DNA from: Trichosphaerium sp. ATCC 40318
Lineage: Eukaryota; Protista; Tubulinea
Length of the DNA: 64,000 nucleotides
Direction of reading: 5' to 3'
NCBI GenBank assembly: GCA_038496445.1
Contig: JALMLS010000204.1
Location: 186,001-250,000 of the forward strand
Of this stretch, positions 10,688 through 16,596 are shown piece after piece. Below the pieces are notes generated by a model, which was not told the DNA's origin, searched no databases, and was given only the letters and a program-made list of their open reading frames with translations. The position numbers and the translations under genes are program-made. Positions within the stretch are counted from its first letter, which is position 1. Each line of letters opens with the position of its first letter.

Positions 10688-13600
10688 ATGCACGCGACTT
10701 CCTACTGGTGTTTTGCCATTCTAGGCCTCGCCCTCTTTGTGTCATTGGCACTGTCGGCTTCAAACGCCAACCCAGTGACTGTATTCTCGTGTAACGCCAC
10801 CGCAACAAACTGGGGATGTGAAGAATCAGAGTACAGGCTGAAGACAGTGACGAGAAGTGGCCTGAAAGTCCAAGTGCCTAACAGGCTAAGATGTGAAACA
10901 GTCCCATCGCCACTTATGCCTTGGGCTTTAAGGACACAAAGAACGGATGATTATGTTATATTCGCTGGTGAAAGAGCTTCACCACAAACATCGTATGTCC
11001 CTGGTAGTATTGTAGATATTACACTTAGGGTAACGAAGTACAACGCAAAATACCGCGGGCTGATGATGTACGTATCGCAGCTTATTCTTTCAAATCGAAC
11101 CGATTGATTTTTTTTTTTGGTTTTCGTTCTCATTTTTTTTCGCGAACAGGTACGCTGAAGATGCTGATCAAAATCACGTTGGTGAGTGGAAGATTTCGGA
11201 CGAGTTTCCAGGTATGTACCTTTTGGAAGAAATTAAAACCACTTTTTTTTTTTGGCACGTGATAACCCCACGTTTATCTTGTTTCTGACTTTTTTGAATT
11301 TTAGCTTTTTTCAATACTCCTTGGTCTGCAAACCATAGTTGTAGACACACAGTAATGCACACAAGCGCAGTTCTAAAACCTCTACGAACAACATTCACTT
11401 TTGTCGCTCCTCCAAAAGGAACAGGCACAATATGGTTCAGAGCTCTTATCAAACGCGGTGATGCAAACACTGGAGACTTTTGGTGGCCAAACATTGACGA
11501 AGATTTCTCCATGACCGAATCTAGCGATCCTTCTCCTACAAACAACGGATGGTTCCAATCTGAGGTACGCAACATAAGCGAGTGCCTGTAACCATGTTAC
11601 TGACAATCCACAGCTTGGACAATCATGTACTGAAAGATGTGACGAAGAAGGCCTTCTTTGTGATATGGTATCAATGGAACGTGTCAATAGTATAAGTCGT
11701 ATAAATGAAGAACTAAGACAATCCGGATTCATATGCAGAAAGCCGTACTTGAGCGGATGCAGCTCCACAGGAACATCTCAAAGTATTGATGGCTTCTGTT
11801 ACTTTGATGATACACGTTGTGAAACCCAAAATAGAATTAACGACCGCGTATCTTGTGACACCAACAGCACAGATCCAGATGATGGGTACGTCTTTCATAG
11901 CAATACCCTATACATTCTAACACCTTGAAGCCTTCGTTTCTGTAAATGCCTTACATCTACACTTGCTCCTGTACAACCAGAAGAAACATTAGTCCCACCA
12001 ACGCCAGGACCAACACCGTTTATCCTACCACCTCTACCAGTGGAAGAGCAAACAGCAGCTTCATCTAGATCTTCCGCTTCTCTCCTTATCACGTGCTTAT
12101 CAATCCTCGGAGTTTCATTCTTTACCGGTCGTGGAAGCTCAAGCACTCAGTTCTTTCTCTTGGTTATCGTGATCGCCTTGGTAGCTATCCCAGCACCTAT
12201 TCAAGGCCACAACTGGATGTTCAGTACCAGTAGACGAACATACGCAAGTACAGAAACACCTTGCCCTCCAAAGATTCAAGACGCTCCTCACGTCCAAGTC
12301 GGTCCTGGTCAGTACTTTGAACTCGAATGGGCTTGCGGTCACAACGATTGGTCTTATTTCGTTGTTGTTCATGAAAAATACGAAGATAAGTTGAAGCTTC
12401 ATACAAAGAGTCTTATGCTTCAATACTTCGACGAAGCACCTGCCAATAAAGTAAGTTCAATACCAATATATCACAGGCAGTTCAGACAGAGGAATGATTT
12501 CCAGACAGCAGCTTATACAAAGTACTATGGAGCAGAAATAAAGGAAGATATGAACAACTTTATTCCTCGACCTGAAGCATTTGGTTCATGGAGAGACGAC
12601 GCTACATTACTACCTTACAAAGACGAATACCACAACGACAACTATGCAGAGTATGAGAACCCTGAAATGCCATGGATCGAGTCTATATTGAGAGCAGAGC
12701 ATCTAATCAGCAGACCTTCTGATGCTGATGTTGCTAAAATTAAAATACCAGGACGTGCTGGTACTGGTAGATACATTGTTCACTGGATATGGAGAGGATA
12801 CCGTGATTGTACTGATGTAGATTATGTAGCTAATCAAGTTGAACATATCTACGGTTTCAAAGAAGATTCGCCTTCATTCACGTGCGTACAAAGATATTTT
12901 CTCTTCTATTTTTTTTCACAACAGTTTTTTGAAAACACGTTTTGTCTGCTGTAGTTGTTTACTTGATACTTACGTTACATGTAGGCGTGTTGATCACTGT
13001 TACTTCCCAAATTACAATAGCGCCCGTACTTGCTCTAGAATCTACGATGACTTCGCTTACTGCGCAAGACATTGTCCTCCATCTTCTACTTCTTGCGCTG
13101 GTGTCGCAGTAATGCCTCTTACAGTAGCCCATAATCCTTACTTCCAAGAATCCGGAATTGTAGATCCTGGATGCTACAGCCACTTTAACTTCACGACTCT
13201 CACTGATCCAGCTGATCAAGTCTATGTCTGCTTCGCTGTAAACGGACGTATTCCTTCAGATACATTCGGCGTAAACGAAATAGTATACGAAGATGACCCG
13301 GCATACCATGCAACATGTTACATGAAGAACTCCGGAAGAACATTCCCAGGATACGTACCACCAAACGAGAAGAAAGTCAGCTGGAAACACGGAGAGAAAT
13401 GCATTGATTGCCATGCCGTTAACTTGAACAAGAATCTATCACGTGTTCCTATATGGCCATTATCAGAAGATTGTATCAACTGCGACAGAGAGCCAGTAAC
13501 AACAGAACCAGTACTAAAACCTGCGTTGGTTGACAAGGTTTTGAATCATTCATGTGACGGAGTTAGAGGATCATGGAAGAACCTTGGAGGAGGTCAGAGA

Positions 13601-13885
13601 CATCACGACTGTAATGGCACTACACACCAACAGTGTCATAAATTGCTTCATATGAACGGAAGGAAGGAGAACCAATTATTCGAAAACGAATGCGCTATTG
13701 TTGCTTCTAAGGATCCTGATTGTACTGATAAGATTACAACTGTTAGAGGTTATATTACATTTGGTACAAGAAGGACAGTTTATTGCTACTGTCAAACGAA
13801 GTTAGAGTGTTGTAATGGATGCTCTCTTGTTGATAAGAGGTCAACTTCTTGGAACGCATTCACTATTGAAACGCCAATAAATTAA
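10688..13885 (+). CDS. Secreted/membrane polyprotein: signal peptide - Reeler domain - Cys-rich module - Pro-rich stalk - TM - internal signal peptide - His-first LPMO/His-brace-like domain - Cys-rich C-terminal domains
   Basis: Introns at about 11069-11149, 11212-11305, 11565-11613, 11886-11930 and 12882-12984 join ORFs 10688, 11355, 11665, 12040 and 12839. Reeler-like SYVPGSIVDITL..YRGLMMYA..VGEW..FTFVAPPKGTGTIWFRALI. Second part begins IQG|HNWMFS and contains EWACGH and GRYIVHWIWRGYRDCTDVD. Confidence 0.8.
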
Positions 13886-14262: not shown

Positions 14263-16596
14263 ATGCGTATCATACTGATTCTATTAACGCTTGCGGTATT
14301 GTCAATTTATGCCCAAAAGCCTCCAAAACCGCACGTGGTCTTCCTTTTAATAGACGATTACGGTTGGGCAAATGTTGGTTACCACAGGTACGTATAAATA
14401 TTTTGTTAACGTTGTATCTTGCGTGGCTGGTGACCAAACGTTGTCAATATTTTTTAATTAATAATACAAGCAAAAACCTTTCTTGATCACCTTTTTTTCA
14501 AGGCTAAATACACTCAAACTAATAGGGACCCACCTACTGAAGAGGTTCAAACACCAAATATTGATGCATTAGTGGCTGAAGGCATAGAATTAGATAGACA
14601 CTACGTATTCAAGGCATGTTACTTTCACCCTACTTTTCCGATTTCTTTTTCGCACGTGATTGTCTTTATTATTTGCTTTTTTTAACCAACTGATATAGTA
14701 CTGCTCTCCAACTCGTTCTGCTATACAATCAGGAAGAAATCCTATCCACGTCAATGTGTTAAATATCCCACCAACCTACTACAATGCCAGCGATCCTGTT
14801 TCTGGTTTTCAAGGCATTCCAAGGAACATGACAGGTATTGCTGAAAAGATGAAGAGTGCTGGTTATGCTACTCATATGGCAGGCAAATGGTAAGGAACAA
14901 GTATATTAGTGTCATAATGATCGATCCTAGGGACGCCGGCATGGTACCGTTTTTAAAGAGGGTGAAGATTCTCGATTTAAGTTATTTTCATATAGGCGAC
15001 ACCTGACCATTCTCCTCTTGGGAGAGGATACCAAACAAGTCTTCATTACTTTCACCACGAAAACGACTACTGGACGTACGTTCACATAATTGAGCTAGCT
15101 AAAGAAACACCTACTTGATTTGATTTCTGGCTTGTTCCTTATGTTACTACAAGGTACTATGTTGCTCGGTGTTCACAAGAAAATATTGTAGATCTATGGC
15201 ATACTGATGAGCCAGCAAAGTCACTTACTAATCCAAAAACGTGCAGTCAGGAAAATCAAGCAAGTGACTGCGTTTATGAAGATGAGTTATTTGAACAATA
15301 TGTTTTTGATGTTTTGGATAACCATGATCCTTCGACCCCTCTCTTCCTCTTCTGGGCACCTCACTCTATTCATACTCCGCTAGAGGTACAATCACTATAA
15401 CATTGTTACTAACATATTTAAGGTACCTAAAGAGTATGTAGACAAGTTCTCATTTATTGACAACAAATCACGACGAATGTATCATGTAAGATCCTTTTTG
15501 TGTGAGACAGCTTTTTTTATGACTTTTAACTTAGGCTATGGTGAACTTTATTGATTCACGTATTGGCATGATTGTAAACAAGTTGAAGGAAAAAGGCATG
15601 TACGAAGATACATTGATTGTAATGTCAGCAGATAACGGAGGTCCAATTTATGGCAATGGTATTGTGGTTTACTTTTCAGACTGAGATGTTTGTTAACCTT
15701 ACAAGGTACTTCTGGAGGAAATAATTGGCCATTACGAGGTGGAAAGGTGAGTAACTTTGAAGGAGGCGTAAGAGTCAACGCTTTTGCTTCTGGAGGTCTA
15801 GTACGTAAACGAAAATGATGTAGTCTTCAGTTGTTTTTTTTTACATACCAAACTAGATTCCAAAAGAACGGCGAGGAACTAAGGAAGAAGGGTATATCTG
15901 TGGATGGGATTGGTATGCTACGTTCTGTGCTATAGCAGGTGTTGATCCAACTGATGAAAAAGCTGCTAAAGGTAATGCAATCATAAAAATTCACTTAAAG
16001 TCTTCTCTAAGGTTTCGCTAGCAAAATTACCTCCAATTGACTCTCTCAACATGTGGCCTCTTTTATCTGGACAGACGAAGACAAGTCCACGTAACATAAT
16101 TCCCCTGGGAAGTCCAGATCCTCCTGAAGAGAGAATGAGTGTCGTACCTACAATAGTGAATGGAATAATAGTAGGTGAATGGAAGGTAAACGCTACATGC
16201 AAAGTAAATGGACTAAACAATTAACAGCTCCTTGTTGGTAATATATCTCAAGATTCTTGGACCGGTCCACGGTACCCTAATGTTACTACAAATTGGGAAT
16301 CAACAGCTCATCATCTGTCTTGTGGAACAGGTGGTTGCCTATTCAACATTAAGAATGGTAAGAGAAGCTTGTCAAGGCCATGTGAAGTTGGTTGTCATTA
16401 ACTTTGTTTCTTATTAGATCCAACTGAACACGTGAATTTGGCAAGTCAGGAACCTACAATACTTGCTGAACTACACACTCATTTGAAAACAGCTCAAGCA
16501 TCAGTTTTTAGCCCTCATAGAGGAACTATATCACCAAAAGCATGTGAAGACGCTATCAACAAGTACAACGGATATTGGGGACCTTTTGTTGAATAA
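14263..16596 (+). CDS. Secreted arylsulfatase B-like (S1, formylglycine-dependent) sulfatase, multi-exon
   Basis: Signal peptide, then KPHVVFLLIDDYGW, TPNIDAL, YCSPTRSAIQSGR (CxPxR), GKWDAG, SADNGG, NNWPLRGGKVSNFEGGVRV and DPTEHVNLA. Stop TAA 16594-16596. Confidence 0.92.

Follow-up and report, generated by a model that had tools for sequence, protein, structure and literature searches.

A putative LPMO-like (lytic polysaccharide monooxygenase-like) histidine-brace domain behind a predicted internal signal peptide in a precursor with a Reeler-like domain from Trichosphaerium

How could a domain whose metal site would depend on a histidine at its very amino terminus be made from an exon that has no start codon ahead of that histidine? 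This question is raised by a gene in a 64 kb stretch of DNA from Trichosphaerium sp. ATCC 40318 (contig JALMLS010000204.1, positions 186,001-250,000 of the forward strand), hereafter the window. An open frame at 11929-12881 of the window reads ...VAIPAPIQG|HNWMFSTSRR..., and a sequence-only reading had proposed that it encodes an unclassified LPMO-like or X325/Bim1-like protein with two histidines and a tyrosine at its copper site. When the sequence was re-read, H1 (codon 12208-12210), H45 (12340-12342) and Tyr198 (12799-12801, within WRGYRDCTDVD) were found at the positions that had been given, and no in-frame ATG was found between the TGA at 11926 and His1. We consider it probable that this domain, here called HNW, is an unclassified LPMO-like histidine-brace copper module. 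More tentatively, and at somewhat less than an even chance, we propose that it derives from a two-in-one precursor, in which an internal signal peptide would create the copper-binding N-terminus of a new LPMO-like family and would give rise, at a fixed 1:1 ratio, to two products: a Reeler-like protein held in the membrane and a secreted copper oxidase carrying lectin-like modules.

The HNW domain occupies 12208-12881 of the forward strand (225 residues) and was identified by homology, alignment, an AlphaFold2 model and structure searches. The start proposed in the sequence-only reading (12208) was retained, and its end (12830) was not, as exon and domain both reach 12881 and are followed by a GTGCGT donor at 12882. 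An exhaustive HMMER search with the domain identified 416 homologous clusters at E ≤ 1e-3, 207 at E ≤ 1e-10 and 14 at E ≤ 1e-30, the best cluster representative having 44% identity to it. Named sources of the relatives were Flabellula baltica and Rhizamoeba saxonica (Amoebozoa) and Aulacantha scolymantha and Phyllostaurus siculus (Rhizaria); others came from an MMETSP transcriptome and from many metagenomes and metatranscriptomes, representing uncultured marine and soil protists. Database names of the members were limited to "hypothetical protein" or assembler labels for open reading frames (ORFs). No relatives were found in the viral contigs searched.

Conservation was assessed in an alignment of 69 full HNW domains (A1), and the start of the domain in 129 relatives that aligned from query residue 1. 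A histidine opened the domain in 128 of these 129, nearly always as HNW, and without exception the domain stood directly after a hydrophobic stretch whose last residues were small. Across all 69 aligned domains H1, H45 (within a T-G-H motif) and Y73 were invariant, and a further set of positions was conserved in at least 90% (N2, W3, R9, P18, H28, Q30, Q35, D144, Y149, D174, G187, Y189, W195, G197, Y198, D200, D203 and G216). Position 198 was Tyr in 67 domains and Phe in two, an alternation that is typical of the axial position of LPMOs. Y198 stands three residues before C201, in agreement with the earlier observation that the tyrosine lies three residues ahead of a cysteine as in the LPMO end strand. 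The signal of a conserved family, with 416 clusters and invariant H1 and H45, is far beyond chance.

Two cysteines, Cys19 (12262-12264) and Cys201 (12808-12810), were distributed in an all-or-none manner: 57 of the 69 domains had both, 12 had neither and none had a single one. This pattern points to a disulfide by which the N-terminal segment is held to the last strand at a point three residues past the tyrosine. As for the proposed convergence of H1, H45 and Tyr198, the covariation shows only packing of the N-terminal segment against that strand.

The answer to the question of the missing start codon appears to lie upstream. The gene was read by hand and by homology as six exons (10688-11067, 11150-11211, 11305-11564, 11614-11885, 11931-12881 and 12985-13885, all on the forward strand), in a window with a G+C content of about 38% and short introns whose donors are of the GTAYGT type. 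Spliced, the exons total 941 codons plus a stop, giving a precursor of about 941 residues in which His1 is residue 418 and the HNW domain spans residues 418-642. The order in the precursor is a signal peptide, a Reeler-like domain, a Cys-rich linker, a two-segment membrane hairpin, the HNW domain and two PAN/apple-like modules, and the whole gene is collinear with full-length relatives.

Exon 1 (10688-11067), recognized as an ORF, carries the ATG, the N-terminal signal peptide and the start of the Reeler-like domain; it ends at a GTACGT donor at 11068 and is collinear with the N-termini of relatives P0001, P0003 and P0007. The middle of the Reeler-like domain is encoded by exon 2 (11150-11211; acceptor AG at 11148-11149, donor GTATGT at 11212), which was placed by alignment with homologues. 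The C-terminal part of the domain, including FRALIKRGDANTGDFWWPN, is in exon 3 (11305-11564), whose frame and splice sites were read by hand and which has 45-62% identity to homologues. Exon 4 (11614-11885), also placed by homologue alignment, encodes the Cys-rich linker module, which was found in 74 of the 91 relatives with an internal HNW domain. The TGA at 11926 is the sole stop separating the Reeler part from the HNW domain, and it falls inside a 45-nt in-frame intron (11886-11930; donor GTACGT, acceptor AG). We accepted this intron because the resulting junction, DDG|LRFCKC, matches ADGHRFCYC of relative P0001. A separate start codon for the HNW protein was considered and rejected, there being no in-frame ATG after TGA 11926 and the mRNAs of relatives being continuous. 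A GTAAGT at 12451, within exon 5, was likewise considered as the donor of a micro-intron, for which the candidate lengths were 26 nt (out of frame) or 30 nt; it was rejected, since splicing there would delete residues that fall in a conserved His column of the family alignment.

Exon 5 starts with a translated Pro/Thr/Ser-rich spacer (11931-12072), which is followed by the hairpin. A hydropathy scan placed hydrophobic segment 1, SASLLITCLSILGVSFF, at 12073-12123, where it could be a stop-transfer anchor or a tail resembling a glycosylphosphatidylinositol (GPI) signal. Translation and the same type of scan placed a putative internal signal peptide at 12124-12207, consisting of a basic loop (TGRGSSS), an h-region and a PIQG cleavage site, so that TQFFLLVIVIALVAIPAPI is followed by QG|H. 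Such an arrangement is common in the family: two hydrophobic segments preceded the His in 74 of 87 internal-type relatives, and the loop between them had a median length of 5.5 residues and was net positive in 54 cases and net negative in one. Among the 91 internal relatives position -1 was Ala in 75, Gly in nine and Ser in seven, and position -3 was Ala in 39, Val in 24, Ser in nine, Thr in eight, Cys in seven and Gly in four. The 37 N-terminal cases also had nearly all small residues at -1 and -3 (exceptions at -1 were two Pro and one Thr), and the hydrophobicity of the h-region in the internal cases was equal to that in these 37 ordinary signal peptides.

Based on these features, we propose the following route. 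The N-terminal signal peptide would take the Reeler-like part into the lumen of the endoplasmic reticulum, hydrophobic segment 1 would halt transfer, and the short basic loop would remain cytosolic. Hydrophobic segment 2 would then resume translocation, and signal peptidase would cut after PIQG. The outcome would be a membrane-held (or GPI-anchored) Reeler-like protein and a freed HNW domain with two PAN/apple-like binding modules and a free N-terminal His. A GPI-anchored form is our speculation: the small residues ahead of segment 1 could also be where a GPI anchor is attached to the Reeler half. Viral glycoprotein polyproteins have the proposed topology, in which a cleavable signal re-initiates translocation after a stop-transfer segment: the precursors of flaviviruses, hepaciviruses and bunyaviruses have a stop-transfer segment, a cytosolic loop and an internal signal that is cut luminally, giving two products from one ORF. 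The HNW precursor differs from these in belonging to a cellular gene family and in that the cut would be chemically needed to make a metal-binding amino terminus.

The same data can be read without a cut. The hairpin would then stay in the membrane as two spans, His418 would never be N-terminal and the domain would be a copper-free binding or adhesion module. Cleavage is here deduced from sequence, and position -3 in the window gene is Ile, a residue seen there in none of the 91 internal relatives, which counts both for an uncut hairpin and against the route that we propose; Ile at -3 is tolerated by signal peptidase. A Met lies in the hairpin, 12-35 residues before the His, in 43 of the 91 internal relatives and not in the window gene. 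In those relatives it could serve as an internal-initiation route to a short form, so that routes other than cleavage are possible. Nevertheless, all 91 internal relatives obey the (-3,-1) rule, with the His directly after the site throughout the 129 relatives save one, and a conserved cleavage motif would have no obvious reason if it were never cut. The same domain also stands behind ordinary N-terminal signal peptides in sister sequences (e.g., P0073 beside P0068). We therefore regard an uncut hairpin as very improbable.

The proposed cleavage matters for the domain because its copper site would depend on it. His1, as the first residue with a free amino group, and His45 would hold one copper in a histidine brace, Tyr198 would lie below the metal, and the Cys19-Cys201 disulfide would join the N-terminal segment to the last strand. 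The AlphaFold2 model, built with A1, had a predicted local distance difference test score (pLDDT) of 93.4 and a predicted template modelling score (pTM) of 0.91. It is an LPMO-type beta-sandwich, the fold that the sequence-only reading had required, with His45 in the turn joining strands 37-43 and 47-55, a partly helical excursion of about 80 residues (56-132) after His45, and Tyr198 opening the last strand past a two-residue turn. The short spacing between the two histidines and the short loop before the tyrosine, which had been singled out as unlike the AA families, proved to be family-wide: the second histidine (His2) is at 45, versus about 90-115 in AA10 and AA15, and the tyrosine follows the two-residue turn.

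Structural neighbors were ranked in an exhaustive VIA-align search (wide). The top match was LaX325 (6ibh; Z 8.1, 122 residues aligned, root mean square deviation 3.1), and the second was TdAA15A (5msz; Z 7.7, 118 aligned, deviation 2.6), in which residues 1-209 of the model aligned to 1-195 of 5msz. These were followed by AA13 (6.8), AA10 chains (6.0-6.2), AA11 (6.1 and 5.9), AA9 (6.0) and AA16 (5.9). LPMO or LPMO-like chains filled 12 of the first 20 places and 15 of the first 50 (Z 5.9-8.1 in the first 20), each aligned from the first mature residue; for entries aligned from His35, His37 or His19 we take these to be the first mature residue by their numbering. Z values of 6-8 are rated by the tool as common for beta-sandwiches, and the support from the fold thus comes from the enrichment of LPMOs and the N-terminus-to-N-terminus register. 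The copper site of TdAA15A consists of His1, His91 and an axial Tyr184 (PMC5823890). Tyr198 may correspond to this Tyr184, as judged by counting from the end of the alignment and not by residue-level alignment.

Several observations speak against a new LPMO-like copper module. Z values such as these are common for beta-sandwiches. Foldseek against the PDB listed a few LPMOs here and there, and none of its matches reached E ≤ 1e-3. Pfam LPMO models, including PF03067 of AA10 and AA15, matched none of the 69 members at E ≤ 0.1, NCBIfam gave zero matches to the family, and the 69-sequence profile had no hit at E ≤ 10 in the PDB, where solved members of AA9-11, AA13-18 and X325 are available. The position two residues before Tyr198 is variable, and there is no second-sphere Glu or Gln as in AA9 and many AA10 proteins. 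Lastly, the convergence of the site, the cleavage, the copper binding and the activity are all predictions from sequence and model.

Other searches also placed the domain outside the classified families. Pfam searched with four exon pieces one by one gave no match, and the HNW domain gave no match to LPMO_10 (PF03067) at E ≤ 1. The domain as a single sequence (phmmer) found nothing significant in the PDB, where the best E value was 0.49 and the proteins were unrelated. A word-index search with the 225-residue domain returned nothing, and with the family profile returned four short relatives only. No paper was found in the literature that connects LPMOs to Reeler, to haptophytes or to an internal signal peptide. 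AA18 corresponds to CelOCE of bacteria, and LPMO14 (Voshol 2017) is a family of fungi and oomycetes. The earlier proposal of an unclassified LPMO-like or X325/Bim1-like protein is supported by this lack of a family match in Pfam, NCBIfam and PDB sequences, together with the LPMO-type fold of the model.

The lack of sequence matches bears as well on whether HNW might be no new family but a highly diverged branch of one that CAZy already lists, AA15 or AA10 (Pfam LPMO_10 covers both). Its N-terminal pattern H-x5-P-S-R and C-terminal pattern G-x-Y-I-V-H-W…Y-x-D-C-x-D-V are, we assume, similar to motifs of AA10 and AA15. Like Tyr198 of HNW, the axial Tyr of TdAA15A stands three residues before a Cys, and both proteins have a last strand of the YxxCxD(V/I) type. 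The AA10 chains 5fjq, 5wsz, 4oy7, 3uam and 6ndq had 14-23% identity to HNW in structural alignments beginning at the N-terminal His. Feature and shape searches of the ESM-Atlas found nearby eukaryotic clusters that were partly PF03067 (13-23% of members), and AA15 is reported from haptophytes, diatoms and other protists (PMC5823890). Against such membership stand the empty Pfam and PDB profile searches and several differences in structure. His2 is at 45 versus 91 in TdAA15A, the helical excursion or long loop region comes after His2 and not before it, the loop ahead of the Tyr is cut to two residues, and the structural Z is only 6-8. In AA10 proteins His2 comes after a long L2 region and the axial residue is usually Phe, and there is no similarity between AA10 and HNW at the level of hidden Markov models; unlike AA15, the HNW domain is also mostly internal to its precursor. 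We consider inclusion in AA15 or AA10 improbable.

A serious alternative, if still the less likely one, is that HNW is a non-catalytic protein of the X325/Bim1 kind, whose brace would bind Cu(II) in order to take it up, store it or deliver it and would cut no polysaccharide. LaX325 was the best structural neighbor, and X325/Bim1 proteins (LaX325, 6ibh, DUF6595) share with HNW an N-terminal His after a signal-peptidase site, a compact sandwich and, in keeping with the short H1-H2 spacing, no long L2 loop ahead of His2. In X325 an Asp on a Gly-rich loop is the fourth copper ligand (PMC7529816), and one of the nearly invariant D144, D174, D200 and D203 of HNW could fill this fourth equatorial site. 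Moreover, a histidine brace has no predictive value for LPMO activity (PMC13353379). However, the difference in Z between LaX325 and AA15 is less than 1, which is a tie by the tool's standard, and the X325 model DUF6595 matched none of the 69 members. At 225 residues HNW also has a helical insertion of about 80 residues after His2, and X325 proteins have no binding modules and carry a GPI anchor on their own C-terminal end, whereas HNW is followed by two PAN/apple-like modules with no such tail. The conserved H28 (12289-12291), Q30 and Q35 may likewise resemble second-sphere residues of catalytic families. Because of these conserved polar residues and the attached binding modules, we lean toward HNW being an enzyme that oxidizes a glycan or glycoconjugate, possibly one bound by the PAN/apple-like modules, over its merely binding copper.

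These modules are in the C-terminal region of about 300 residues, which is Cys-rich and accompanied the HNW domain in 108 of the 129 relatives. It is joined to the HNW domain across an intron of 103 nt (12882-12984, GTGCGT…AG), the junction …SPSFT|RVDHC… matching the conserved RIDHC of the family. The R-I-D-H-C motif (12985-12997, forward strand) opens the C-terminal region, and its His is invariant and the Asp before it near-invariant. An alignment of the region (A2) had 15 invariant positions, of which 13 were Cys. Pfam searches with the region from 17 relatives gave no match. Its AlphaFold2 model, of moderate quality (pLDDT 72), matched almost solely PAN/apple-type folds in VIA, a type of module that binds glycans or proteins. 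The first module, in exon 6 (12985-13354; residues 1-123 of the region), matched plasminogen PAN, TgMIC4 apple, SML-2 lectin, the HGF N domain and kallikrein apple (Z 5.0-5.9). A Cys-rich middle segment with invariant CxxC pairs (13355-13498; KCIxC, CxNC), recognized by alignment, was covered by no structural match. The second module (13499-13885, including the stop TAA at 13883-13885; residues about 172-298) was PAN/apple-, MANEC- or WSC-like, with matches to leech antiplatelet protein, HAI-1 MANEC and the Wsc1 WSC domain (Z 4.4-5.7). The protein ends …IETPIN, without a C-terminal hydrophobic tail. Fungal copper oxidases with PAN or WSC modules (6ryv, 9n3u) have modules that matched those of the HNW precursor, at a weak Z of 3.6-4.0, and their catalytic domains are unrelated.

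The Reeler-like half is tied to the internal layout. It was present in 73 of the 91 relatives with an internal HNW domain and in none of the 38 with an N-terminal one. In relative P0007, residues 65-158 matched Pfam Reeler (E 2.6e-8), and this region aligns to exons 1-3 of the window gene. The same order of parts was found as a continuous ORF in transcript contigs L001 and L002 and in EukProt Trinity ORFs. It was also found in L003:10001-13738, on a compact, intron-poor 20-kb genomic contig of eukaryotic origin (JGI 3300009437), where a 1245-residue Reeler…HNW precursor is encoded by one uninterrupted ORF. Since continuous ORFs were seen both in transcripts and on a genomic contig, the Reeler-HNW fusion is not an artifact of assembly or annotation. 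The precursor gene on L003 is flanked by FKBP, V-ATPase c subunit and cytochrome-b5-reductase-like genes, and the source of the contig is probably a marine picoeukaryote. The Reeler-like half could act as a surface receptor, a substrate holder or an electron-transfer partner.

In a quick tree the internal and N-terminal layouts were interleaved, forcing at least six changes, and a single origin of the internal layout was not supported. Sister pairs in A1 (P0068/P0073, P0052/P0075 and P0109/P0086) are close relatives that differ in layout alone, one internal behind a Reeler half and the other behind an N-terminal signal peptide. Because the layouts interleave in this manner, these pairs point to repeated gain or loss of the Reeler half, to paralogues or alternative transcripts, or to some of the short forms being truncated contigs.

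About 70% of the 129 relatives are predicted to mature via an internal signal peptide, in contradiction to the stated rule that all histidine-brace proteins have N-terminal ones. If this is true, HNW would be the first family of histidine-brace proteins to mature by a route other than an N-terminal signal peptide. LPMOs have reshaped views of biomass degradation, chitin turnover and copper uptake, and new families have brought new substrates; here none of the more than 400 sequence clusters, which come from Amoebozoa, Rhizaria and uncultured protists of marine and soil habitats, has a functional name. The mature HNW domain is of small size, has a confident model and can easily be expressed, and the conserved pairing with a Reeler-like half offers a way to study the joint making of two extracellular partners.

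No second copy (paralogue) of the HNW domain was found within the window. Directly downstream of the gene, at 14263-14390 on the forward strand, a signal peptide is followed by an N-terminal sulfatase-like motif (…VVFLLIDDYGWANVGYH…) and then by a GTACGT donor, and the gene that begins at 14263 looks like one for a secreted arylsulfatase.

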